Shown: piece by piece, positions 1 through 55,400 of the stretch
Position numbering within the stretch: position 1 is the stretch's first letter
How the letters are laid out: each line of letters begins with the position of its first letter
Assembly (NCBI RefSeq): GCF_052425735.1
Contig: NC_135761.1
Coordinates: 42,160,001 to 42,224,000, forward strand
Length of the DNA: 64,000 bases
Origin: Oculina patagonica
Taxonomy: Eukaryota
Direction of reading: 5' to 3'
Made by a program: the position numbers and the translations under genes
The notes under the pieces: model-generated
Told to the model about the DNA's origin: nothing
The model's input: the letters and a program-made list of their open reading frames with translations, nothing else
Databases searched by the model: none

Positions 1-621
1 AATTATGGAACCTTTAAAGCTCTGTTTGATTACCTGGAAAGTGTTGGAGCCTTAGGAAGATTAAGACACTGGAGAGGTTGTGAGATGTTTTCGAAAAATC
101 GTGCTCCAGTTAATAAAGTAACTAGAACGACCAAATTAACCCCAGAAGAACTATTCATGGTTCTTGTGCGTCTAAGAGTAGGGTTGACTGTAACTGACTT
201 GGCATTAAGGTTTGGAATAAGCGAATCAAGTCTCAGCAAGATCTTTACCTCATGGATCAATCTGCTGTACTTTCATTTGAAAGATTTGTGTGAAATGCCT
301 GAAAGTGAAACAGATGGAAAGGCAAGGCAGTTTTCCAAATTTCCGTACTTGAGAGTTATTATCGATTACACTGAGATATTCACTCAGAAGCCCTCCAGCC
401 TACAAGCGAACAAAAAAATTTATTCAAATTACAAGGGTTACACAACTTTTAAATTCCTTGTTGGAATAGACCCTCATGGTGCTATTGTGTATGTCTCACA
501 AGCTTGGGGTGGACGTACATCTGACAAACATATCACAGCCAATTCCCCAGGTTTAACTACTAAATTAAACATGGGTGATGAGCTTATGGCAGATAGAGGA
601 TTTGCTGTGGAAGCTGTCTAA
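1..621 (+). pseudogene. ISL2EU/PIF-Harbinger-type DDE transposase (HTH_Tnp_4 + DDE_Tnp_4), cut by the window start and 3'-truncated
   Basis: ORF 85..621 has LTPEELFMVLVRLRVGL..DLALRFGIS (HTH), IIDYTE, YSNYKGYTTFKFLVGI, WGGRTSD and MADRGF. It stops right after DRGF, so the third catalytic residue is missing. Confidence 0.88.
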
Positions 622-1655
622 AGCTGCCCTTTCATAGGTTTTGCCCCTCTCAAAGTTCTTAAATTTCTTAGGTTTATGCAAGCTCTCATCCAGCTTGTTA
701 TGAATGCAAAACCATGAGCTGTCAAACTCTTTATGTCCACATAGTCCCAGTAATGCTGGTATCTTGCTGGCAGTGATAATGCCAACACGATTGTTCAACC
801 ACTCTTTTGAGCCTTGTATGACATCAACATAATTACTTCCACAAAGCTTAACACTTTCACATTCTGGTATCTTGACTGTTATTAACTCTTCAGTTGAGTG
901 GGAGATTAAATTTAGTAACTCTTTAGTCTTTTCTTCTGAAAAGACACTTTCACTACTATGGGCTCCAAAAGATGTGCTTGGCTGAGAGACAAGTACTGAG
1001 TGCCAGACATCTTCAGCCTTGTCAGCAAATCGTGGTGCAAGGATGGTGTCATCATAGGTCACAGTATGTTTGGCATAGTCATGCTCATGGTTTATTAGCC
1101 TACACAAGTGAGCATTTTGGTAAGATAGATGAAAATACAATCCGGATTGTATTTTGTATTTTGTATTTCGTTAAGGTCTTCAAGAAATGGTTTGAAACAT
1201 CAACACTAGTTTCATTTAGTCTATTTTCTACTTTGCTGCTAATTTTAGAGACATCTCTTGACAACCAGTCACTTTTGTCTACATTTGAGCCGTCCCCTTG
1301 CCGCATCTGAACTTTCTTTTTTGTTCTCTCATGCATTACAGTTTTTCTAGCTGAGCGTGCATTTCTGAAGTATTTTGGACGAATGTGTGATGCAGTCTTT
1401 ACCTTTGCACTATCCTTCTTTCTTGTGTTTGGGTGGTGCCAAGTCTGGAGTTTCTGAGTACAAGTCAAGGCCAGCAACAACGTTTTATAATGTGTAAAAT
1501 GCTTTAACTGAAGAAGAACTAGTATAGCGTGACAGCAAAGGCCACAGTTCCCTACTGCACATTCACAGTATGCCTTTTCAGGGGTGTTACCATTAAATTT
1601 TACAGTTACTGTGCGTGTGACATGATAAGCAAGCGATTTAGAAGTCTCACAGGGT
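610..1655 (-). pseudogene. ISL2EU accessory gene: SWIM zinc finger + YqaJ/lambda-exonuclease-like domain, frameshifted and truncated
   Basis: The minus frame upstream of ORF 1100..1480 reads YCECAVGNCGLCCHAIL (SWIM CxC..CxH), then CTQKLQTWHHP. ORF 565..1140 has QGSKEWLNNRVGIITASK and FERGKTYERAA (YqaJ N-terminal motifs). It converges on the transposase, as in ISL2EU. Confidence 0.82.
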
Positions 1656-1699
1656 CATTCGTTGAAAGGCTGCCACGATCACAGGAAAAAAATACATTT

Positions 1700-2260
1700 T
1701 CCAATATGGTAAATCATTGGAAAATTTGAGTTATAACCTTCCAACATTGGATAATCATTGGTAAATTGTATTGAACCAATAAAAGTCCAATAAGGTTCCA
1801 ACAAAGGGAAAAATGCTTTTTCCTCATGATGTGACAGTTGGAATATTATTGGAGTTTAATTGGAACAGAACACATTTGGTCTTCCAATGTTGGATAATAC
1901 CGTGAAAACATTGGAAGACATGTCTTCAGTTACCAAAGATTGCACAATGATATACCAAGCTATGCTATTGAACTGGTTATGATTGGAACTTCATTGTGGT
2001 ATTATTGGAATAAAATATTCACAATTTTCCAATGTTGGATTATACTGTGAAATTATTGGAAGACATATCTTCCGTCACCAAAGATTGCACAATGATATAC
2101 CAAGGTATATTTTGCTATACCATTGAGCTGGTTATGATTGGAATATCATTGTAGTATTATTGGAACAAAATGTTCACAAGTTTCCAATGTTGGATTATAC
2201 TGTTAAATTATTGGAAATTATTTCTTCAGTTACCAAAGATAGCACAATAATATACCAAGC
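1700..2260. repeat. Left subterminal repeat region of the CACTA element
   Basis: Many CCAAnnTTGG and ATTGGAA motifs, plus about three copies of a roughly 140-150 bp unit (ccaatgttgga..atac.gt.aaa.attggaa...taccaaagat.gcacaat.atataccaag). Confidence 0.8.
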
Positions 2261-2716
2261 TTTGAAGAGATAAAAGAGAATTCTTTGATTTTCCTTGTTC
2301 ACATGTAACTGCAGATCAGATCTGGATTTTATCAGAGGTCCCATAACAACAGCACAGTTTGCAGAAATATTGCATTACAGTTAAACGTGTACTAAGCGGA
2401 CTCTCAGGGAATGTTCTAGTGTTCGCGTAGTACAGGGTGACTGTCTGCTTAATTTAATGAAGCATGTCCACTTAATACAGGTTTCTGTTGTATTCTGCAA
2501 AAAGCCATAAGTAACTTACAGTTTCCATTTGATAGATTGATATCACAAAACTATTAACCAATGAAAATTAATTGATCACTTATTATTTAATTGTAGAAAC
2601 TGAACAAATAACACAACAGAATTAAATTAATGACAATCAGTGACTATTTCAGAGGTTAAAAATATAAACTGAAAAACCGCTCTACATGCATACAGGGGGT
2701 CATTTACAAAACATAT

Positions 2717-3397
2717 TCAACTGAATTTTTCTAAGAGAACTAGAACATCTGCCCAGCAGGAAGGCCATCTTAGGTTAATGTTGGCTTTGTTAAAAATATC
2801 CTTCCCCCAATGGAGAAGATCCTCAAAGATACTCTGGGAAAATCCTGCTTGGCCTTTTATTTCTACCAGCCGAAGCACAGTGTCATAAAGGAACTGCTCC
2901 AGGTCTTCCTCTCCTCCTTCATCTCGGTTGGAATCATTGTGTTCCTCACCATTTGAACTGTCATCACTGTTACATGCAGCATTGTCATCTGATGACAGAC
3001 TCATGGAACTTTCTTCATCACTAGGTATCTCATGATCAGACGTAGTAGATTCGTTTTCAAACTCATTTTCGTCACTTTCATAATGTCTTCCAGCCAATGC
3101 TGATGGTAAATCGCTGGGAGATTCGCAGAAAGAATATGATGCCTGAAATACAACATCACATGTATCCGATTTCTCTGATGAGGAGGTGGATGGAACGAGC
3201 AACTGGTTATCCAAAGTTTCCGTTCTAGCTCTATTTGCCCTTTGGGTATGCCTCCATGCCGTCATGGGATAGACAGCTTTGCCTTTACATAGAAGACATA
3301 AGCAGTGAACATGCGCCTTTCCCGACGACGAGATGTTCCGCGCTTCATCACTATCCAAACATCTACACAAGTTTGCTGGTTTTGTGGACGACGCCAT
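2717..3397 (-). pseudogene. N-terminal part of the CACTA transposase (Cys/His motif + acidic linker); catalytic domain absent
   Basis: MASSTKPA..HVHCLCLLCKGKAVYPMTAWRH, a long D/E/S tract, then a helical segment ending WPSCW. It lies inside the TIRs, and no DDE core is seen between 2260 and 2717. Confidence 0.6.
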
Positions 3398-3713
3398 ACA
3401 TTGCTTTGGCAACAACAAGGTCACAAGGATAACGAACGTTAACATAAATTAAGCGAAATTACCGGTAAGCCAAATCCTTCGAAGTGTTCAAACCAAAAAA
3501 GCATAATAACAACAGTTTGTCAGACTGTCAGCGGTAATTTATGCGGATCATGCGTGTTTCATGTACCCAGAGTCCTCCCAGGCCCTTTGACGCCTTTTCC
3601 CGCCGTTTCTTTCCTCGCTCTGCAAATCGAAAGGTGTTGATCGAACGGAAGGAAGAAGTATATTTTTCAATTGGAAAAGAGCTAGTAGAATTACATGTAA
3701 GAGTATCAAAAAG

Positions 3714-6700
3714 ATGTCTGAAAGAGCTGAAGAGGATATCAGCGCTGAACTGTCAGAAGGTAATGTATTTCAATCCATCGGCACCCGGAACGTGAAATTC
3801 AAGATTTCGCGCCATGGTCATTTTCTGTTTAGTTTTTATATTTCAAAGCTTGGTGTTTTTTTGTTTTACAAACTAAATTTTTCAAATTTGTTAAAGTTTT
3901 AATTTCTATTAGCCGGGTTAGCCGTTCCCTTCTTTTCTTTCAATGACTGTTTAGAATGTAGTCTTAGCAAGGATGTTCAAGGTTGGTCAACAGAAGATGT
4001 GCATTCCTGGCTGACAAAGGAAGGATTTCATGAGGAGGCAGTCGTGTTTAAAGGTTTGTATCCATTCTTTTAATCCTTTTCTTCCTTTTATGTACATGTA
4101 TGTACTAATTAAAAAGACTTCATGGATTTAACAGACATTCGTTTTTACGTTTAACTTATATCTTTCTTTATGCAAGCTGAAAAATATGTTCTCGGTGTGT
4201 TGCATACTGTAAATCCATCCCAGTCAGTTTTGCTTTCTAGACTCACCCTGTTCTTTTATTACCTTAACAGCTGAGAACATAACTGGAAAGTCACTTTATT
4301 GCCTAGAAAAAGCAGACTTGAAAGATATTGGAATTAACCCTATGGGCAAGAGATTGGAAATATTCGAAAAAATTAAAGAGCTCACATGTCTACAATCTGA
4401 AAAGAAAGCATCCAGCAAATCAGAAGGTAATTGTTATTTTTTTTGTAGAAGAAAAGAGAAAATGGCCTTTTAAGTTATTGTTTATAAATTTATGTTTCAG
4501 TCATCTGACAGCTTTATTTAATGCACCTTGAATTTGTTGAAGTCTTCGAGGCAAATACGGTTATTCCCCCCTAAAAACCTTACTTTATCATGCTATTTTT
4601 TGTGTGTGTTTGATTTCTTTTTCAGATTTTTAATAACCAATTTAGCCAGCCAATAGTTGCTGGTCATGTAGATCAAAGAAAAATCTAATGTTTATACTTA
4701 TCTTAAATTAGTTACTGGACAGGTGTGGAAAAAGAAAATAACTAAGGCAGACAGGTCAACTTGGAAACCAAATGAAAAAGCATGTTATCTGGAAAAGTAA
4801 GTCCTTTGAAAATTTCGTACCTTTGTGTCATAGTTGACATAATTTGTCCTCAGATTGCCAAACCTTGAATTTCAATTTATTTAAAGTTAGCTAATAACAG
4901 TAGCAACCGAGGGCTGTCATTAAGCTTTGAAGCAGCCAGCTACACAAGGAAGGTAAATGGTCAAAAAAATACTCAAGATAGCATGCCCTAGCTGTTGTCT
5001 TTTAGTCATTTTCAAACTTTGAGTAGCCAGCTATCTTCACGGCAGTTACCGTTCATAATAGTCGGTTGCCGGCTACTAATGACAGGTATGAGCGCAACAA
5101 AACAACAGCTACTGTTAACAATATTTTTATTCATTGGCAATTATAAAACTTATCAGTATTATCACTGAACTTGTCCATCAACAAAGAATTGCAGTAAGCA
5201 ATAATACATAGTTTGCACTTCATGCTTTACTACCTAGTTTTATTAAAGCAATCACAATCCTTTCTTTTTCTTTAGGATCTCTATTATTAACCAGGAAGCC
5301 AGACAACTTTGGCCAGGAAATTCAAAAATCCACATCAAAGGAGATGCAACTACCAGGCTGAAGATGGAAGAATTAATCACACGCATGGAGCCAATGTGCT
5401 CCATCCCAGAAATAGGATTTGGCAGAGGTGAGTTTTACAGTGTTAATGTCCAATCACACATTAGTGCAGCAGTCAGTTAAATGTTGTTGTTTTTATTGAT
5501 TGATTGATTGATTGACTAACTGACTGATACTGACTGACTGACTGACTGACTGACTGACTGATCGATCAATCAATTGATCTGTTGGGGAGGGGGGTCTCAA
5601 AAGCCAAAACATTTAAAGGGAAGAATTAAGCTAAACTGGAATTTCCCAGAGGGGTGGGGAGATAAAAGCAAAAAAATGAAAAACTCCATGGGGGGAGCTT
5701 GGATATTTTCTGGAACAACACAATGTGAAAAAGTGTGAAATGTATTAATTTAATATTGCATGTTCCTTTCAAACTAATAACAAGAAGAGGCTGTTGAACA
5801 AATTTTCAGTGTGATTGTGTGAAAGATAAGCCTGTTTTCGATTAATTACTTAAAACAAAAATGTGTCTTTCACAGATGCTATCAAGAGTCATTTACTGCA
5901 ATGGTTTCACGAAAAAAATAGGAAGATTGAGGATGGCTACGACTATGAGGTAATGTAACACTAACAAATTTATATTTACTGATAATAAAAAAGAGACACT
6001 TTTTTATTCACCTATACATTTGCAAAGCTCATTTTTATGCAATGCTCAATGAATCAGTTCTATGTTGTACAGTACAAATAAGCTCGAGTTCCAGAAATCC
6101 ATGAAAAATGAAGTGTTGTCAACTTTATGATTCAAGGGGATCCATCCCCCTCCATGAAAGAAGTGTCGGTCATGGTTCTCATTAAGTGCCAGCAGCAGAC
6201 TTTTTTGTGCCGACTCATAGATACATCCACCTTCTTGCTGTCTATTCAAAAACTTTAAATGAGAACCCTGACTTGTCCTTTAGCCCAAAACAGAATACAC
6301 TTGTATGTGCTTTGATTTATAGCCAATAATTATTGTTTGCATTTCCTAGGCCACTCACAAACCTGCAAAACGTGCGAAAAGATCATTTTCACCAAAAGGT
6401 TCAGATACAGACTCTACATTGTCACCTTACTCATCAAGCACAGGCAGCTTAAGTTCACCAACTGAAGGTTTGTCATAATATCCTATCGTTATTATTTAGT
6501 ATCTGCAGCCAAATTATGGTGCCTCGATGCCTTATGAGTGGTTCTGAAAATACAGATGTATAATATAATTACTAGTATTTCTGCTAGATTGTCGTTGACC
6601 ATATGTATTTTCAATTATTATTTTCTAGATGATGAAGAGGACAACTCTCCAACTCCAAGCAGTGACATTGATGATATTTCTGCTCATTCAGCTGAAGTTG

Positions 6701-7023
6701 TCGTGCTAAAAGCCTTTGATGCTCTTTCCATACATTTCCTAACCGTAAAGAAGCACTTTTATCCTCTGGGAAAGGTGCTAAAAGTTAAATGTAGGAGCAT
6801 TGGGAAGTACCAGTTGGTAGTTCCTCTAGCAAAGGCCCTTATCACTAAAGGCCATGTTGACATAGAAGGGGACGTCAATTATAAGAAACTTGAAAAAAGT
6901 CAAGTTAAGGTATTGACAGATATTAATTCTCTTATTTCTGATGAAACCAGGAATTCTCCTGTTTCAGATGTTGCTGACAATGACAGCCCCCCATGCAGCC
7001 AGGTGTCCAGTCAAATAATTTAG
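3714..7023 (+). CDS. 8-exon SAM-domain protein (374 aa), accessory gene of the CACTA element
   Basis: Exons 3714-3759, 3955-4053, 4271-4426, 4712-4796, 5276-5427, 5876-5949, 6350-6467 and 6629-7023. All introns are GT-AG with compatible phases and there is no internal stop (1125 nt). SAM signature WSTEDVHSWLTKEGF..F.AENITGKSLYCLEKADLKDIGINPMGKRLEIFEKIKEL. AATAAA near 7228. Confidence 0.85.
5495..5575. repeat. (ATTG)n/(ACTG)n microsatellite in intron 5 of the SAM gene
   Basis: Direct tetranucleotide repeats. Confidence 0.9.
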
Positions 7024-7382
7024 TTGATACAGTAGCAATATATTAGAAATAGCTTTATTTTTGGTACATATATATACATGTACAGCTATCATGTTGTTCA
7101 TGTCCGTTAATTTTTGGACAGTTTTGCTGTTTGTTGACATTATTACTGATAATTTCCACCCAAAAAAGCCAAGAGGTGACTGTAATTAGTACATAGAGCA
7201 ATCATGCTGTTCTGGTTATATGAATTGAATAAAAAGTTGTATTCATGTAAACTTCAGAGTTCTGTTATGATTGCCTGGTGTTATGATTACAATTGAAGGG
7301 TCAAGTTGAAAACTATGCTAAGTGGGCAAAGCGTGTATGCCCACTTTGCATAGTTTTTGACTTGACCCTTCAATTTCAATGC

Positions 7383-7912
7383 AATGTTGGAATATATTGT
7401 TATCCAATGTTGGAAACATATCATTCATTGTTGGAGAGTGATGTTATCCAATATTGGAGACATATTGTCCAATGCTGGAGAGTTTTATTTTCCAATATTG
7501 GAAACATTTTATCCAATGTTGGAGAGCTCAATTATCCAATATTGGAAACATACTGTCCAATGTTGGAATATATCATACTCCAATATTGGAAACATATTGT
7601 CCAATGTTGGAGAGCTAAATTATCCAATATTGGAAACATACTGTCCAATGTTGGAATATATCATACTCCAATATTGGAAACATTTTGTCCAATGTTGGAG
7701 TATATCATTCTCCAATATTGGAGATGACTTTACCAATGTTGGGAAATATGGTGGTCCAATATTGGAAACTTGTAATCCAATATTGGAATATCATATGTTA
7801 TTTACCAATATTGGAAGATATAACCATTTACCAATATTGGAATACCATTTGGGTTTACCAATGATGTACCAATGATATTACAGTAATTAACCAATTAACT
7901 TCCAATGTTGGA
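7383..7912. repeat. Right subterminal array of CCAAT(A/G)TTGG palindromes, 44-bp period
   Basis: Sites start at 7448, 7469, 7492, 7513, 7536, 7557, 7580, 7601, 7624, 7645, 7668, 7689, 7712, 7733, 7756 and 7777 (alternating 21/23 bp). Confidence 0.92.
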
Positions 7913-8159
7913 AAATGGATTTTTTTCCTGTGGATTGTTATTTGATCAGGATGCATTTGGGGTTACCACAGCATGCGGCAGATTTGTAAAACACATAGAA
8001 AACGAGCGGCCTTGTTTTAGCAATTTAGACCATAATTGACCACCCTCAGTGGATAAATGCGTGGGTGAGACTTCTATATACTGGGATCGCCGGATGGTTC
8101 TACATTCGGAATGTCATCTGGAAAAATGGAAGGAGAAAATAAAGAGGACCTGAACTGTA

Positions 8160-8568
8160 ATCAAACCAGTTATGATGTACGGCGGCTTAATCTGGGGGTC
8201 CACCTCCACTAATAATATAAGAAGGTTGTTTAGGTTGCAAAAGAGAGCCGCAAGAGTAGTTCTCGGAGTAAGAACAAAAGAGGAGAGGACAATTAAGCTT
8301 TTTAAGAAATTGAAATGGCTACCTTTTTATGACGAAATTAATGTAATCAAGTTATGCTTAGTGTTTAAATGCCTTAATGGCCAATGCCCCGAGTATTTGT
8401 CCAATACACTGACAAGGGTTAGTGATATTTCTACGAGACAGTCGAGGCATGGAAGCATAACCCTGAGATGCCCGAAATACTCACGTGAAACCGAGGGAGG
8501 AAGGACTTTTGCAGTCACGGCAGTGAAAGAGTGGAATAAGCTCCCTATTAACATTAGATCTAGTCAGA
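8160..8568 (+). mobile_element. CR1/L2-group LINE, C-terminal region of the RT ORF (fragment)
   Basis: YGGLIWG..LFRLQKRAARVV, LKWLP, FKCLNGQCPEYL and RTFAVTAVKEWNKLP are typical post-RT motifs of CR1/L2/Crack LINEs. It is cut by a poly-T (the minus-strand poly-A of another insertion) running into the gap. Confidence 0.8.
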
Positions 8569-8600
8569 ATTTTTTTTTTTTTTTTTTTAATTCATTTATT

Positions 8601-9100
8601 NNNNNNNNNNNNNNNNNNNNNNNNNNNNNNNNNNNNNNNNNNNNNNNNNNNNNNNNNNNNNNNNNNNNNNNNNNNNNNNNNNNNNNNNNNNNNNNNNNNN
8701 NNNNNNNNNNNNNNNNNNNNNNNNNNNNNNNNNNNNNNNNNNNNNNNNNNNNNNNNNNNNNNNNNNNNNNNNNNNNNNNNNNNNNNNNNNNNNNNNNNNN
8801 NNNNNNNNNNNNNNNNNNNNNNNNNNNNNNNNNNNNNNNNNNNNNNNNNNNNNNNNNNNNNNNNNNNNNNNNNNNNNNNNNNNNNNNNNNNNNNNNNNNN
8901 NNNNNNNNNNNNNNNNNNNNNNNNNNNNNNNNNNNNNNNNNNNNNNNNNNNNNNNNNNNNNNNNNNNNNNNNNNNNNNNNNNNNNNNNNNNNNNNNNNNN
9001 NNNNNNNNNNNNNNNNNNNNNNNNNNNNNNNNNNNNNNNNNNNNNNNNNNNNNNNNNNNNNNNNNNNNNNNNNNNNNNNNNNNNNNNNNNNNNNNNNNNN
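8601..9100. other. Assembly gap (500 N)
   Basis: Run of N. Confidence 1.
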
Positions 9101-24265: not shown

Positions 24266-26385
24266 GTAATTGCACACTTTAAATCAAAAACTCTTACAAG
24301 GGAGCTGCCAAAAGAACTTAACAGCCTGGGACAACCCTTCACAAGATACATATGGGTGGTGACCATTTAACTGTTGAGCGTGCAATCAGTGCTGTGAATG
24401 CTGTCGGAGATGCTGATACTCCCTTTGAAAGACTCCAAGGCCTTGTATTGAAACAAGAAGATTTTCACTGTGAAATGAATTTTCTACAGGTTATTTTTTA
24501 TTTGTCATGTTAATAACATTTATGGACTTTTTAAATAATTCTTGTTTTTACACATCAGAGATATTACTGAGGTACTAGTTACTACATGAAAGCAAGGGTA
24601 CCAATAATTAAGAGTCTTTTGCAACAAGACACTTCCATAAACAAATTAATATGTAAATGTAAAGTTGTTTTTATCTAGCTTGTGGTCTTTAGCTGTTTCT
24701 TGGTTTGCTTAGAAAATCTATTTCTTGATTTTTGAATGGACAAAATTTTAACAGCCTTGTTAAAGGGGCTATGTCACGCAATTTTAGGCAATTCCGGCAC
24801 TAACCAACTGTTCATAGAATTAACTGAAATATCAAAATAACAGACACCAATAGGCCAAAAAGTGGTGGGATGGGCAAAAATTGACAAAATTAAAACGGAT
24901 TACATTCTGGTAAACTTGGAAAAAGTTTGCCCGACTTTAAGTGTATCTCTAATTGTATGCAAAGTGTCGGTTACAATGCTAAAAATTCATACTTGTTTGT
25001 TATGTGGCTGTTATTTTGCCAATATAAGGCCCTGCCAATTTGAAGTTTAGTGCTCTTAATAAACGAAAATAAATAGAACTGCATAAAATACTATGACATA
25101 GCCCCTTTTAGCATTAGGTTATAAACCCCTAAAGAAAGGCAAAAATTCTGACTTGGCAAGTTATATTGTCATTTGTATAATAATATTATATGGGCTGTAC
25201 CTCTGAGTTATAACAAATGCTGTCTTTCAACTTGCAGACAGTATTTGACTATCTCTACAAAAGCGAGTCAGTGGAAGACCTAGGAAGTTTGTACCAACTA
25301 AAAACTAGGCTGAACAGGAAAGATGTAAAAGATAAGGTTAACAAATCATATCACGGATGTGAGGCTTTTTTTAACACTGTTATTGATGGGTATATTGTGT
25401 ATGCTGCCATGCAGTTTTTTTGGCATGCAATCCCCCCAAAGTAATCCATGTTTAAACACATTGGAACCTACAAGCGATGCTGATTGCCCTGTGTCACAGA
25501 AACAGCAGTTATATAATGCCGTTGGAAAACTTGTGGAGAAGTACGTCTTTCTTGAGATACAGCCGACTGCAGTACTCTTCACCAAAGTTCAAGAGGCAGA
25601 GCAACCCCAGCGCTACAATTGTAGGTATCCAGAATGTGACAAGAACTATCAACATGAGAAGAGAAGAAACAACCCTGAAGTGTCAGTACATGGACTAACC
25701 ATCAGAAATCATGAGGAAAGAAGCCCACCAGACTACCGAAATGAAGATGGCGTGTTTAATTATTCACATAACATTGTTAAGACTGGCCTTCTCTTTCAAG
25801 ATTTCCAAGACGCAATTAAAGAGGGCGATGGTGCAAGAATGGAATATCTTTGGAAGTTCATGATGCTCTTGTTTAAAGTAGCAGGGAAGACAAAGTATTC
25901 CTTTGGCAGCAATCAGACTTCATGCACAACTCAATGCCTTGCTGACGCCCCAAGAGGCAAATTGTATTCGCTGGAACCGTACTGTTAACTTAAAGGGTGG
26001 GGTGGGAAGAAATGTAGCAACAGATCAAGCTATGGAGCACAGTATCAAGGACACAAAAGAGTTGATGAATGGCCAGGGAGCAAATCTTTCGTTTTCTACA
26101 GCTCAGTTGTACAGCAGGGAAAGCGACGATGTGAAGTGCATAATGAAGAACTTTGACCAGGAAAACAATGTGCGCAAAGAGTCAACAAAACACCAAAGGA
26201 AGCAACATACAGACATCCAAATAGTTGTTGACATTCTCGAAGAAATGAAGGCTTTCACAGAGATTCCTGGGAGAACCCACACTGGAATTGGATCTGTTCC
26301 CAAAGATCCAATCTCTGTTCTTAATTATGTAGATTTGAATGCTTGGCTAACCAAGCATAAAAAAAGCTGGATTCCTTTGCTTTAG
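24266..26385 (+). pseudogene. DUF6589-like (probably Academ/AcademH-type) transposase with an internal C2H2-like finger; spliced and frameshifted
   Basis: GGDHLTVER..TPFERLQGL..EDFHCEMNFLQ, intron at about 24490-25237, GSLYQLKTRLNR, DAIKEGDGAR..WK..L.F...KTKY and WNRTVNLKGGVGRNVATDQAMEH. Finger: CRYPECDKNY..(H>P)..H. Confidence 0.68.
24764..25106. mobile_element. Kolobok-like MITE in an intron
   Basis: TIR aggggctatgtca / tgacatagcccct; flanks TTAA (left) and TTTA (right). Confidence 0.7.
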
Positions 26386-46312: not shown

Positions 46313-48881
46313 ATGACAACAAATTTTAAAATGGTTTCTTTAAATGTTCGGGGTTTGCGTTCCTCCGATAAGCGAAAAGCGATACTTTTATGGATAACAA
46401 AACAAAAAGCTGATGTTGCTTTCCTGCAGGAAACATATAGCATAATTGAGGATGAACAATTTTGGAGAACACAATGGAAAGGCAAGATGTTGTTCTCGCA
46501 CGGCTCAAATCACAGCAAAGGCACCATAATTCTAGTGAAACAAAACTTAGAATTCGAACAAAAAACAGTTTTTTGTGACCCTAGCGGTCGCTTCATATTT
46601 CTAGAAGCCGTTGTGCAGGGGAACCTTTTTTTATTTGTAAATATTTATGCTCCCAACAAAGTTCATGAACAAGAAGTGTTTTTCAAAAAGATCAGAAGCA
46701 AAATTGAAAGCTATGATTTCGATCCTAATAGAAAAGTTATAATGGGAGGTGACTTCAATATTTTTTTTTTTTTTTTTTTTTTTTATTCATTTCAATAGAA
46801 AAAAAATACACACAGAATAACGTAAAAATAAACAAATACAATAATTGAAAAAAAAGAAAAAAAACTTACAAGTATAATATAGTTATTAGCACACTAGATC
46901 TTAAATTAGAAATTACAATACATCAATACATCATCAATATTAATACACGCTATTACTCATCCTACAGTACACTCTTATTTCAAATAATTCGCTTTAACTA
47001 CAATTAAATTTTTCGAAGATGTATTTAAATTTTACATTGGCTAAGAATTCATTTAATGACAGCTTTCCATTCAATAATTTCTGATTGTATACATAATATT
47101 TTGCATATAAAAAGGTGAAGTTTAACTTTCTAATGATATCTATTTCTTTGTTTATGTTATCCTTGTCCTTACCAAAAATTAATTCAGTTGGAGAGAGGGT
47201 AAGAGAGGTGGCATTTTCTTTATTAAACCATTTTATAACCTCTGCGAAGAATAATTGACTCCAATTACAGTTGTAGAAAGTGTGAATTATGGAGTCATTT
47301 AAATCACAGTATGGACACTTTGTGTCCTCTGCCACACCAAAGAGAAATAATTCCTTTTTGGTGACTACTATTCTGTGTAAGAGTTTGAAATAAAATTCCC
47401 TAAGCTTATTATCTCTACATACGTTTCTTACGCGACTAAAAGAAGGTTGTAGAGATGCTTGACCAATTTGCAAGTCTCTTTCCCATTTGGAGGTAGCCTT
47501 CGGTTCAATTTGTTCTTTATTTACGAGGAGCCGATAGTAATCTTTGTTTTTCATTTTGGTTAAGTTGATGGAGGTCTCTGGGGAGAGGTGAAACATAGTG
47601 CTAGACAACAAACCTGCTCTGTCTACAGGGTATGACATCGCACGTTCTACAAGATGCCTGGAGGTGACTTCAATATCTTTTTCGATGAGAATTTGGATTG
47701 CTTCGGTGGCAATCGAAAAATCAAAGATAGGAGCGTTAATGAAATTAAAGATATGATGTCAGAAAATGATTTAATAGATATATGGAGAATCCGTCATCCA
47801 GATGATAAACGCTTCACATGGAGACAAAAAACGCCGCTTATTCAACGTAGATTAGATTTCTGGCTTGTAAGCGATTCGTGCCAAGAAGAAGTTCTTGCTA
47901 CAGACGTCAAAATTAAATGGTTCAATGCCTGAAACAAGTGATGAAATTTTAAACGAAATAATTTGGAATAATAAACACATCTGTATAAATAATAAATCAT
48001 GTTTTATTAGCGAACTGATGGATATAGGTATAAACAAAATTGGTGACATGATTAAACTGGATGGGACATGTAAATTTTTGACATGGAATGATTTGCATAA
48101 CAAAGGTCTTAAAATGAAAAATTTTCTTTTGTGGCAAGGTCTAATCGATGCAATACCAGTTAAATGGAAACAAGCTATTAAGTCCATGACAGGTCCTTAT
48201 ATCTTGAACTCGGATTCAAATGAATCCACTTTAACTATTAATTCAGTTAAAGTACCCACATCAAAAGTAAATTCCAAAAAACTGTATGGGAGTCTGGTCT
48301 CAAGGGTTTGTGAAAAACCAACAGCACAAAGGAAATTTGATGAAATGTTCCCTGACCCTAAGCGTGATTGGAGTAAAATATACAGCTTGCCTTTCCAGGT
48401 TGCGTTAGATGCGCACACAAGAGAATTTTAATACAAAGTGGTTAATAGAATCTTATTTACAAATTCTAAATTGTGTAAGTTTGGCTTGGTGGAGTCGCCT
48501 TTGTGCACCTTTTGTGGAGAGGAGGAAGAAACCCCTGAACATTTGTTGGCATTATGTTCTTATTCTAGTGCCTTTTGGAATGAAAATTTCAACTGGCTGC
48601 AACAGTGTGTCACTGGAATTAGTGTTGATTTGTCAGAAGTAGTCAATGTTATACTTGGTTTGCCTGATCTCGAGGAACATTTTATGGCTGTAAACCACAT
48701 AGTTCTTGTGGCAAAACAAACAATTGTACTTTGTAGGAAGAGATCTACTAATCCCAGTTTGAATGTCTTCCATGCTCTACTAAGGAAAGCTATTAAAATA
48801 GAAGAATTTATTGCTAAGCAGAAAAATAAATTGCACCTCCATTTAGTTAAATGGGAAAATTTTTTAGATAAACTTATTTAA
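46313..48881 (+). pseudogene. Tx1 no. 1 ORF2: APE endonuclease joined directly to the C-terminal domain (RT missing)
   Basis: SLNVRGL, FLQETY, NIYAPN, GGDFN, DIWR and RLDFWL. At about 47907 it jumps to IIWNN and zf-RVT. Confidence 0.88.
46762..47659 (-). mobile_element. 5'-truncated Tx1/L1-clade LINE nested antisense in LINE no. 1
   Basis: 17-bp TSD ggaggtgacttcaatat at 46745-46761 and 47660-47676. Poly-T at the left end. ORF 46994..47638 has KLREFYFKLLHRI..CPYC..DSIIHTFYNC (zf-RVT). Confidence 0.93.
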
Positions 48882-51649: not shown

Positions 51650-54600
51650 ATGTCACTCAATGCTCGAGGGATTCGAGACCTCCAGAAACGCAAATCAATT
51701 TTTACGTGGATAGAAAAACAGAAAAGTGACATAACGTTTCTTCAAGAAACCTATAGTACACCAGAAATCCTTAGTGATTGGAAATTCCAATGGCGTGGAG
51801 AAATGATCTATAGTCACGGTTCGAATCATAGCAGTGGAGTGCTCGTCCTCATTAACGAACAGCTACAGTTCGAATTAAAAAATGCCGTAATAGACGATAA
51901 CGGCCGTTACATTTTATTAGAGATGACCATCCAAGACTCTCCATTTCTTTTGTTAAATTTATATGCGCCTACAAAACTCAACGAACAAGTAGCCTTTTTC
52001 GAAGAAATCCTTTCTATTATTCAAACCACCAGCTTTGACACAGAATGTAGAATTATCATTGGTGGAGATTTCAATGTTCATCTAGATGCTGCTCTTGATA
52101 ACTCTGGAGGAAAAATTGAAACGAAATCTACTGTTAAAAATATTCATGATATAATGCTTGAGTATAACCTAATTGATATATGGTGAGTTCATAATCCAGA
52201 TAAAAAGCAGTTTACTTGGAGGCAAAAAACGCCGATTATTCAGCGACGCATTGACTTTTGGCTCATAAGTGATGAACTACAAGACGACATTCAAAAAGCA
52301 GACATCGTCCCAGCTATCAGAACCGACCATGCAGCAATCAGCTTGTCCCTCAATAGCCTAAAAGACCAACCATTTGGACCATCTTATTGGAAATTTAATT
52401 CAAGCCTTCTTGATGACGATACTTACATACAGCTTATTAACTCTGAATATCCAAATTGGATTATGGAATTTTCTGAAGTTAATGACCCAAGAGTTTTATG
52501 GGATTTAATTAAATACAGGATCAGACAAATTACTCTCCAATATAGCAAAACTATCGCCAAAAATCGAAAAGCACGGTTACAGAGAGCGGAAGAAACCCTA
52601 AAACAATGCGAGGAAATTTACAACAACAATCCATCAGAAGATAATATTATAAAGTTGGACGAAGCAAGGAGTGTGTATGAAGCATTGTATGATTATATTA
52701 TTCAAGGTAAAATAATCAGATCAAGAGTGAACTGGTATGAACAAGGGAAAAAAATTCAAAATACTTTTTAAATCTTGAAACCAACAAAACCGGAAAAACA
52801 TCGATTCGTCGGCTATTTAATTCAGATGGAAAAATAATTTTAAATTCAAAATTCATTATGAAAGAACTTGAGGATTATTACACATCTCTCTACAGAAACC
52901 AGGATTCAAGCGATGGTGACCGATTTATTCCAGATTTCACCAACAGCGTTCACATTCCTAAACTAAGCGATGATCAGAAAAATCTTTGTGAAGGAATTTT
53001 GTCAAACACTGAGTGTTTTAACGCACTATCTAAATTCCCAAATGGAAAAAAACCTGGAAATGACGGCTTAACACCAGAATTTTACAAAAAGTTCTGGAAT
53101 CTTCTTGGCCAACTTATGACCGATTCCTTGAATTTTTCTTACCTACACGGCGAATTGTCTAATTCACAAAAACAAGCAATAATAAGACTTATTGAGAAGA
53201 AAGGAAAGGATAGACGTTATATAAAAAACTGGCGGCCTATCTCTTTATTAAATGTTGACACTAAAATAGCTTCGAAAGCATTAGCATTGCGATTAGAAAA
53301 AGTATTGCCTTTTATTATAAACGGGGACCAATATGCTTATGTCAAAGGCAGAACTATTTTCGATGCGGTCCGGCCAATCGAAGACATCATGGAATACACG
53401 AGAATTAACCAGATACCTGGGTTAATGGTGGCAATTGACTTTGAAAAAGCATTTGATTCTATAAGCTGGAATTTTTTGCTAAAAGCATTAAAATCGTTCA
53501 ATCTTGGTGAATCTTTTGTTAAATGGATCTCTGTTTTTTATTCTAATATATCCAGTTGTGTCACAAACAATGGTTTTTCGACGCCATTGTTCAGTGTTGA
53601 AAGAGGTGTTAGACAAGGAGACCCGTTGTCACCGTATCTGTTCATCATAGTGTTGGAACTACTATTAATTAAAATAAGAAGTGATCCTCGTATTAAAGGA
53701 ATTAAAATTGGTAATATAGAGGTAAAACTTGCAGCCTTTGCTGATGACTTGACAACATTTGTACACAACAAAGCCTCCATAGAACATTTGTTCAGTACAC
53801 TGGGACTATTCGAAAAATGTTCAGGCTTGAAATTAAACAAAGACAAAACGGAGGCCTACTGGCTCGGGAGTAGCCATAATTGTAAACAAAACTTGGGTAT
53901 AGAAACTGTTAATGAACCAATGAAGATTCTGGGAATTTATTTTACGTATAATTCTCGCCTAAAACATGAACTTAATTTTGAAGCAATACTTAAATCTTTA
54001 AAGAAAACCTTGAATGGTTGGCAATGGCGAAATCTAACTGTGTTCGGCAAGATTCAAATCATTAAAACATTCGCAATGCCAAAACTCATGTACCGTGCTT
54101 CCGTATTAAATCTAGACAAAGATTTTTTGAAAAAGGTTAATTCTGTGATGTTTAATTTTTTATGGAACGGAAAAGATAAAATCAAACGCTTAGCTCTGAT
54201 CAGCGATTATAAAGATGGCGGTCTGAAAATGCCTCACGTGGAGTCTGCAATCAAAACTCAGAGAATCATTTGCCTAAAGAAGTATACTGAGAACTATCAT
54301 AGCCCTTGGAAAGGATTCTCAAAGATCACGGCGAGAAATTCCTTCTTCATTGTAATTATAATGGTGCTGATCTACCTAAACACCTTCCTAAATTTTATCC
54401 CGAGTGTTTTGAGACCTGGGCGACAGTCAATACTAAAGAAATGTCCTCCCGAGACGTCATCATGGATCAAATACTATGGAACAATCAATTTCTGCGTATT
54501 GGGGGCAAACCTCAATTTTGCAAAAAATCATATATGGCTGGAATTGTAAAGATAAAAGATATCCTTCTCCCGAACGGCAAATTAAAAACTTGGAATTTCT

Positions 54601-55400
54601 TTTGAGAAAAAGGGCTGAATTTTAACAATTATTTCTTAATCCTTGGTCTGTCAAAAGCACTTCCAGACGCATGGAGAGTCTTGATAAACTCGAAAAATCC
54701 ACAACCCCCTGATGCGCAAGAGCAGAGCACCACCACAATTTTGGATTTAACTCAGTTTGTGCTCAATTGTAATAATGAAGAAATTAAGCTCAGTGAACTC
54801 ACGAGCAAAAGACTGTACTGGATTCTGATAGGGAACATACACGTCCATCCTACTGCAAGATTAAAATACAACTCTTTATTTGATGATCAAAATCTTGACT
54901 GGAATCAAATTTATTTAACGCCACAAAAAGTGACTTTAGACATTAAAACAAGAATGTTTCAATTTAAAATTCTTAATCGTATAATATATACTAACAAATT
55001 GTTGAATAAAATGAGGCTAATAGATACCTCGTTATGTACGTTTTGTGGAGAGTACGAAGAATCTCTCAAGCATTTGTTTTTACACTGCAAATTTACCATA
55101 GATTTCTGGACGCATACTACTAACTGGTTAAATAAATTAAATATTACCATTTCTAGGCTAAATGACAGCGAAATTCTGCTAGGTATTACAAAAGAAAGTC
55201 CTCATTGGACTCTTCTCAATCATATTCTCATTGCTGGTAAGCAAGTAATCCACGCTAATCGGCTCAGGAAAACAAAACCACTCCTACCTCAGTTAATAGC
55301 TAAACTTAAATTTATTGAACACAATGAATATTGTATCGCTAAGAAAAGGGACAGGCTTAAATTTCACCTACAGAAATGGGAAATACTTAAGTTTTCTTGA
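51650..55400 (+). pseudogene. Tx1 no. 2 ORF2 (APE + RT + zf-RVT) with a few lesions
   Basis: APE motifs; PGNDG, NWRPISLLN, DFEKAFD, GVRQGDPLSP, FADD, CTFC..HLFLHC. Stops at about 52184 and 54603, frameshifts at about 52750 and 54310. Confidence 0.95.

Follow-up and report, generated by a model that had tools for sequence, protein, structure and literature searches.

A young deletion derivative from a scleractinian CACTA/EnSpm-type transposon family with two genes, the second encoding a SAM-domain protein

Introduction

Accessory proteins govern how, where, and when DNA transposons move, and to our knowledge those of CACTA elements are poorly known outside plants. In a 64-kb window of the genome of the coral Oculina patagonica (the whole stretch of DNA analysed here, positions 42,160,001 to 42,224,000 of CM126638.1 in assembly GCA_052425735.1, with which locus L004 agrees in every base), a transposon at positions 1680-7932 carries an intact eight-exon gene for a protein with a SAM domain (SAM gene and SAM protein hereafter) next to a truncated transposase gene. 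This raises the question whether the intact gene belongs to the transposon or was taken from the host, and what part it might play in the life of the element. The element is a non-autonomous deletion derivative of a two-gene CACTA/EnSpm-type family of scleractinian corals (CACTA/Mirage/Chapaev or CMC clade), and the SAM gene is a regular gene of this family, not a captured host gene. CACTA-type elements with a second, non-catalytic protein are known.

Association of the SAM gene with a CACTA/EnSpm-type transposase

Complete members of the family are 9.4-12.3 kb in length and encode, between CACAGGAAAAAA terminal inverted repeats (TIRs), a DDE transposase of approximately 1,050 aa and, in divergent orientation, a SAM protein of 330-390 aa. 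All lineages end in CACAGGAAAAAA. The head-to-head arrangement of the SAM gene with the approximately 1,050-aa transposase was observed in six lineages, down to approximately 30% identity. In case of Porites lobata, a 12,335-bp element (L001) with the same termini and the target-site duplication (TSD) ATA contains a multi-exon transposase gene head-to-head with the SAM gene. The same arrangement is present in L002, a second O. patagonica lineage (P0081, approximately 33% identical), and in L012, L013, and L015 from assemblies of the European Nucleotide Archive (ENA); among these, the element of L012 measures 9,416 bp, has the TSD TAT, and is bounded by perfect 22-nt TIRs. For the still more distant L008 and L009, a weak SAM exon is situated in divergent orientation upstream of an intronless gene encoding a 1,054-aa transposase. 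All genomic SAM homologues with readable context (7 out of 7) are located head-to-head with a transposase gene.

Furthermore, the divergence of the first transposase exon and that of the last SAM exon are correlated (Mantel r = 0.91, reached by 3 of 720 permutations), a signal that is driven largely by two close pairs. A search with the exon-8 domain among 1.8 billion representative proteins recovered 73 clusters, mostly exon-sized fragments, and no free-standing homologue of the SAM gene was found in this collection; all named sources of homologues are scleractinians (Oculina, Porites, Montipora). An earlier description of the window, made from the letters alone (the sequence-only reading), had asked whether copies of the gene always sit within CACAG TIRs; the four O. 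patagonica copies, L001, and L012 are all bounded by TIRs and TSDs.

Between O. patagonica and P. lobata, the synonymous divergence of the SAM gene (dS, NG86) is saturated, hence pN/pS and the identity at four-fold degenerate sites (47%) were considered instead. The pN/pS values are low in the central domain (0.17), the C-terminal domain (0.33), and the SAM domain (0.35), but reach 0.86 in the linker. Judged from these codon comparisons, the folded domains are under purifying selection between species over the long term.

An alignment of the catalytic region of four lineages revealed the motifs HWDG, GDH, CRRC, DxMH, HNLxH, and ERAV, conserved in that order, which corresponds to the CMC-clade signature D, D, C(2)C, H(3)H, E as described for EnSpm, Mirage, Chapaev, and Transib (PMC12730594). 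Perfect 3-bp TSDs were found at six insertions (GAT, ATT, GAA, CTC, ATA, and TAT). Due to this signature together with CAC...GTG termini and 3-bp TSDs, the latter two being the criteria for EnSpm (PMC12730594), the family is assigned to the CACTA/EnSpm type, in line with the sequence-only reading. The only recurring Pfam match of the transposases is PF02992 (Transposase_21), a plant-weighted model, with 12-17 bits (E 0.003-0.12) at a cut-off of 28.6.

Structure of the O. patagonica element

The element in the window is 6,253 bp in length and is bounded by 33-nt inverted repeats with a GAT on each side. No second copy of the element or of the SAM gene occurs elsewhere in the 64-kb window. Its features are as follows, with the strand given where one applies (ORF, open reading frame; UTR, untranslated region):

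1677-1679: left TSD, GAT, same letters as 7933-7935
1680-1712, plus strand: left TIR, 33 nt, starting with CACAGGAAAAAAAT (CACAGG start), 88% complementary to the right TIR
1713-2283: left subterminal region with tandem units of approximately 150 nt (1799-2253) and CCAATGTTGG sites at 1741, 1884, 2029, and 2184
2339-2725, minus strand: presumed 3' trailer of the transposase gene; in L005 this segment adjoins the last transposase exons downstream
2717-3397, minus strand: truncated transposase ORF, 226 aa plus stop, no catalytic residues
2722-2726: internal deletion junction; transposase lost from residue 226 to the coding end, where L001 and the full-length P0184 continue
3398-3713: intergenic region between the divergent genes, 316 bp from ATG to ATG, an arrangement kept in all lineages
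3714-3759, plus strand: SAM-gene exon 1, aa 1-16
3955-4053, plus strand: exon 2, aa 16-49, first half of the SAM domain
4271-4426, plus strand: exon 3, aa 49-101, second half of the SAM domain
4712-4796, plus strand: exon 4, aa 101-129, start of the central helical domain
5276-5427, plus strand: exon 5, aa 129-180, central domain with WPGN and IGFG motifs
5876-5949, plus strand: exon 6, aa 180-204, central domain with H.LQW..EKNR...DGYD.E
5950-6349, plus strand: intron 6, unusually conserved non-coding block, 85% identity with P. lobata
6350-6467, plus strand: exon 7, aa 205-244, KPAKRAKR basic motif and Ser-rich disordered linker
6629-7023, plus strand: exon 8, aa 244-374 plus stop, acidic linker and C-terminal helix-helix-helix-strand-strand-helix domain
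7228-7233, plus strand: AATAAA, candidate polyadenylation signal of the SAM gene
7286-7380: hairpin with 43-nt arms (88% complementary) and a 9-nt loop, between the SAM-gene 3' UTR and the repeat array
7382-7899: right subterminal array of 44-nt tandem units, in which CCAATATTGG and CCAATGTTGG alternate every 21/23 bp
7900-7932, minus strand: right TIR, 33 nt
7933-7935: right TSD, GAT

In the transposase remnant (3397-2717, minus strand), a Cys/His cluster (CxC...HxHCxCxxC) and an acidic tract are present, and a helical region begins; the remnant is 72% identical to exon 1 of the transposase gene of P. lobata. It stops before the first catalytic Asp, and the catalytic region is wholly lost in this copy. 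A Pfam search of the remnant gave nothing at threshold.

The eight exons of the SAM gene splice to a 1,125-nt frame (374 aa plus stop) with AG acceptors, GT donors, and compatible phases, and both IKSHLLQWFHEKNRK and KPAKRAKR are present in the spliced protein. This protein is identical in every letter to O. patagonica P0138, which was deposited four times in GenBank and RefSeq (KAL9972462.1, KAL9978095.1, XP_078365984.1, and XP_078371917.1) under the name of a “hypothetical” or “uncharacterized” protein. Two independent annotation pipelines therefore arrived at the same exon model. The eight-exon layout is shared by the P. lobata homologue P0021, of which exons 4-6 have the same lengths (85, 152, and 74 nt). 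The sequence-only reading had correctly described the GAT-flanked TIRs, the head-to-head transposase lacking its catalytic part, and the stop-free eight-exon frame; its view of the gene as hidden was mistaken, since the gene is annotated in both databases.

Some gene models extend beyond the SAM gene. The model P0143 (620 aa; L006, CM126638.1, 46.7 Mb) runs on into unrelated downstream sequence, and P0146 (1,237 aa; contig CM126641.1) carries extra sequence beyond the SAM protein. Transposon genes deposited as ordinary hypothetical host proteins, some of them fused to neighbouring transposon ORFs, constitute an annotation problem.

Sibling copies and age of the element

Three further copies, L005, L006, and L007, are located elsewhere in the O. 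patagonica genome and are flanked by the TSDs ATT, GAA, and CTC. Outside the deletion region, 4-6 substitutions separate L006 and L007 from the window copy, and L005 is 98.7-99.8% identical to it over three aligned blocks. The window copy belongs to a very young burst, and the family was active very recently; the recent mobility suspected by the sequence-only reading is borne out by four copies of 99-100% identity with four different TSDs.

The SAM gene is open in all four copies, which encode two identical proteins, one with E43K, and one with E42Q. Since the copies are near-identical, the intact SAM ORF in the window reflects youth, and selection is not needed to explain it. Thus, of the two explanations that had been offered for its integrity, recent mobility or selection, the first is retained and the second is not supported for the window copy, which is too young to tell, purifying selection being seen between species only. 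The proposed comparison of dN/dS (non-synonymous to synonymous substitution rates) among the copies was computed and is uninformative, with two synonymous and two non-synonymous coding differences. A (TGAT/TGAC)n microsatellite in intron 5 (5482-5561) varies in length among the four otherwise near-identical copies.

Each of the four copies has its own internal deletion, always within the transposase gene. L006 joins the window positions 2473|2949 and L007 the positions 2180|2816, and L005 retains 183 N-terminal transposase residues together with C-terminal exons. The aligned blocks overlap at the deletion junctions by 2-6 bp, which corresponds to microhomology. As each deletion is unique, the copies may mark the sites of former full-length elements and not moves of a deleted copy. 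The differing deletions with 2-6 bp microhomology would have arisen by interrupted gap repair of full-length copies, a process from which junction microhomology is expected according to the Ac/Ds and P elements. All four deletion derivatives retain at least 183 N-terminal transposase residues as an open frame beside the shared promoter region, and a truncated DNA-binding fragment of this kind might have a regulatory role.

The copy L005 (CM126639.1, 12.48 Mb) falls within the span of an annotated Kelch/BACK-domain gene of opposite orientation and probably occupies one of its introns. This copy is possibly a recent insertional polymorphism affecting the host gene.

Domains of the SAM protein

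An AlphaFold2 model, computed with 68 homologous sequences, contains three confident domains: the SAM domain (residues 20-94), a central domain (110-198), and a C-terminal domain (255-351). Residues 21-80 adopt the five-helix SAM fold with a predicted local distance difference test (pLDDT) score of 86-94, the central domain is modelled as a bundle of long helices (pLDDT >90), and the C-terminal domain as an alpha/beta fold of the order helix-helix-helix-strand-strand-helix (pLDDT approximately 96). Residues 207-242, opening with the basic, NLS-like motif KPAKRAKR, are predicted to be disordered.

The N-terminal SAM domain named in the sequence-only reading is confirmed by Pfam, the predicted fold, and its structural relatives. 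In a Pfam search of the exons, the halves of the domain were recognised on exons 2 and 3, with 26.1 bits for SAM_2 on exon 3 alone; P0143, which differs from the window protein by one residue in the shared part, matches SAM_2 with 44.6 bits, above the gathering score, and precomputed PF00536 and PF07647 matches are on record for P0138. In Foldseek searches, the domain superposes on the polymer-forming SAM domains of SAMD1, Shank2/3, DGK-delta, PHC3, and Scm with TM scores of 0.8-0.9 (root-mean-square deviation of 1.0-1.5 Å to those of SAMD1, Shank2, DGK-delta, and PHC3). Judged from this resemblance, the coral SAM domain may polymerise head-to-tail as well.

For the remainder of the protein, searches of the full model against PDB and BFVD with Foldseek matched nothing but SAM domains, and residues 105-374 were modelled again separately for this purpose. 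The homeodomain/Myb-like recognition helix that had been proposed for the central domain was not found: the domain is a long-helix bundle, no homeodomain or Myb structure was present among 65 Foldseek matches, no helix-turn-helix (HTH) fold was matched with support, and neither Pfam nor PDB sequences gave a match. A profile search of both novel domains against PDB sequences returned chance-level matches only (ribosomal protein uS4, E = 0.19; an acetyltransferase, E = 0.41), and an S4-like C-terminal domain was dropped as unsupported.

Both novel domains contain conserved motifs, i.e., WPGN, IGFG, and H.LQW..EKNR...DGYD.E in the central domain throughout the family and VK.RS.GKY in the C-terminal domain, in which K292, K297, R299, and K303 are nearly invariant among the 68 homologues. 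In the closest homologues, both have an isoelectric point of approximately 9. These domains may bind DNA. A Montipora protein (P0049 of M. capricornis / M. foliosa, 373 aa, “serine-rich adhesin for platelets-like”) contains the C-terminal domain of the family without a SAM domain, preceded by a long low-complexity N-terminus, and may be either element-borne or domesticated.

Subterminal repeats and conserved non-coding sequences

The palindromic sequence CCAATRTTGG occurs with 34 matches (23 sites) in the 64-kb window, compared to 0.39 expected by chance, and all 23 sites are confined to the two subterminal regions of the element. At the right end, the two variants alternate with a spacing of 21 and 23 bp, approximately two helical turns. 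A CCAAnnTTGG core is present in the subterminal arrays of all lineages, with other central bases in the divergent ones, and the 12-nt terminus of the left TIR recurs in L001, L002, L012, L013, and L015. Comparing the Oculina and Porites elements, both ends are 78-81% identical (78% for the left subterminal region 1713-2283), whereas promoter, UTRs, and most introns are at the background of approximately 45%. The 316-bp region between the two genes is presumed to be a bidirectional promoter of the SAM and transposase genes. An Rfam scan of the element gave nothing but far-sub-threshold miRNA-like matches in palindromic repeats, including the hairpin at 7286-7380.

The conserved block of intron 6 reaches to approximately 6540, with its P. 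lobata counterpart at 12201-12845 of L001, and includes exon 7, which is 90% identical at the nucleotide level. Identity is at background level (42-64%) in the remaining six introns and amounts to 50-72% in the exons. The intron 6 block is regarded as non-coding due to indels that are not multiples of three. It is absent from the more divergent lineages and has no Rfam match, its RNA folding is not significant (z = -1.3 and -0.5), and its 29-nt conserved word has no match in the metagenome collection. The block could be a cis element or a recombination tract.

Possible functions of the SAM protein

We consider it probable that the window contains a young deletion derivative of a two-gene coral CACTA family in which the SAM protein serves as a nuclear, TnpA-like accessory factor of transposition. 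The protein would oligomerise via its SAM domain, and one or both of the basic novel domains would engage the regularly spaced palindromic subterminal sites or, alternatively, the transposase. In this way it may organise or pair the transposon ends for the transposase and possibly regulate the element. It would correspond to plant TnpA in function without being homologous to it, and movement of the window copy would require transposase in trans.

Several observations weigh against this interpretation. The best Foldseek match of residues 105-374 has an E-value of 1.6, and neither novel domain yielded a detectable DNA-binding fold, the probabilities of MarR-type winged-helix and TEA matches being at most 0.12 and 0.11, respectively. 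Neither domain has Pfam or PDB sequence matches, for the central domain not even at E up to 10, and the basic character of the C-terminal domain is absent in some distant homologues. PF02992 never reached its gathering score, and whole transposases gave no Pfam match. An autonomous copy of the exact subfamily was not seen among the O. patagonica copies recovered, a genome-wide search not having been made, and transcription and splicing of the SAM gene rest on predicted gene models. The main caution comes from animal EnSpm transposases, which usually carry an N-terminal DNA-binding domain of their own (preprint 10.64898/2026.08.24.746577); therefore, the transposase N-terminus may itself read the subterminal sites.

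It is tempting to speculate further that a SAM polymer with two undescribed nucleic-acid-binding domains coats the 21/23-bp CCAAnnTTGG arrays and synapses the ends, that this system evolved independently of plants, and that the element may still be active in the living coral. This more specific version is put forward tentatively; if true, SAM polymerisation would for the first time be the basis of a transposon accessory factor.

As an alternative, rather unlikely in our view, the SAM protein might be an anti-silencing or chromatin factor of the element, which docks to host SAM domains of the Polycomb/SAMD1 type or activates the promoter of the element. Precedents for an anti-silencing role are VANC in VANDAL elements and TET/JBP in fungal transposons. 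The closest solved SAM domains are chromatin-associated (SAMD1 with 35% identity, L3MBTL3, PHC3, Scm, and Sfmbt), but those of Shank and DGK-delta, which are not, match equally well. Retention of the SAM gene in all four deletion derivatives would fit such a role, and anti-silencing accessory genes have been described for other DNA transposons (PMC12730594; 10.64898/2026.08.24.746577); however, the two novel domains have no link to chromatin readers, and the regular palindromic arrays at the ends would be left unexplained.

Less likely again is negative regulation, by which the SAM protein or the N-terminal transposase fragment enables defective copies to damp transposition and thereby limits copy number. 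Damping by defective copies has a precedent in the KP repressor of P elements. All four defective copies do retain the SAM gene, at least 183 transposase residues, and the shared promoter region, but this may be an ascertainment effect, as the copies were found via those ORFs. TnpA is reported to repress as well as to activate its promoter in the Background section of PMC1636069. On the other hand, the long-term conservation in complete elements fits a required factor at least as well as a repressor.

A host gene captured by the CACTA element (Pack-type transduplicate) without a role in the life cycle is highly improbable and largely refuted: capture of host sequences by animal DNA transposons occurs (PMC8277862) and Montipora P0049 has the C-terminal domain without SAM, but all seven readable homologues face a transposase gene, including the TIR-bounded L001 and L012 with catalytic exons, the gene is present in the transposase-bearing L001, L012, and L013 and not confined to non-autonomous copies, the two genes diverged in a correlated manner, purifying selection concerns the folded domains and not the linker, and the 1.8 billion representative proteins include no free-standing host paralogue.

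Comparison with known systems

Similar to the coral family, plant En/Spm (TnpD transposase plus TnpA) has CAC... termini, 3-bp TSDs, asymmetric arrays of short subterminal repeats, two element proteins of which one lacks a catalytic domain, and frequent internal-deletion derivatives. Plant TnpA is produced by alternative splicing of one transcription unit, whereas the coral protein has a separate, divergent eight-exon gene that starts 316 bp from the transposase start. TnpA-like proteins are reported only in flowering plants, and the DNA-binding domain of TnpA consists of two tandem tri-helical HTH motifs approximately 45 aa apart (10.64898/2026.08.24.746577). The coral protein instead combines an N-terminal SAM domain with two domains that have no detectable relation to this tandem; two helical domains are separated by a disordered linker of approximately 45 aa, and no HTH similarity was found for them by Foldseek, Pfam, or PDB searches, TnpA being compared by description only.

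Two separate genes in one cut-and-paste element are also found in PIF/Harbinger elements, which belong to another superfamily (DDE_Tnp_4, TSD TWA) and have a Myb/SANT accessory fold that was not detected in the coral protein. Their accessory protein is required for nuclear import of the transposase and for end recognition. In metazoans, SmTRC1 of Schistosoma mansoni similarly has a Transposase_21-type core, and there is evidence of products without a transposase domain (PMC1636069). These products arise as splice variants, have no recognisable domains, and lack conservation between species (PMC1636069), in contrast to the coral SAM protein with its distinct gene, its conservation across divergent lineages, and its recognisable SAM domain.

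SAMD1, Shank, DGK-delta, PHC/Ph, and Scm have the SAM fold in common with the coral protein (TM 0.8-0.9, 25-38% identity), and SAMD1 also combines it with a winged-helix DNA-binding domain, the domain order being reversed in the coral protein. These SAM proteins are encoded by host genes and show no detectable similarity to the coral protein outside the SAM domain. In the literature, with Repbase outside the search, no CACTA/EnSpm element was found to be described as encoding a SAM-domain protein, and the SAM proteins that the sequence-only reading ascribed to some fish EnSpm elements were not confirmed.

Genomic surroundings

To the left of the element, a truncated PIF/Harbinger transposase with HTH_Tnp_4 and the first half of DDE_Tnp_4 (85-621, plus strand) is abutted by an ORF with a weak YqaJ-like exonuclease match (565-1140, minus strand). 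They represent debris of older transposons, which the CACTA element entered on insertion. Retroelement fragments (RVT_1, zf-RVT) are abundant elsewhere in the window (8172-8600, 20536-22595, 46994-47638, and 52858-55400), and a DUF6589 ORF is located at 25359-25988. A poly-T tract at approximately 8570 is followed by a gap of 500 N (8601-9100).

Significance

In the second protein of this family, a polymerisation-type SAM domain is combined with two domains of confidently predicted fold that have neither a Pfam family nor a structural match. The coral family provides a concrete, testable system for the reading of subterminal repeat arrays. Its very recent activity, visible in near-identical copies and perfect TSDs, bears on the dynamics of coral genomes, and a transposon tool for cnidarians might be developed from it.

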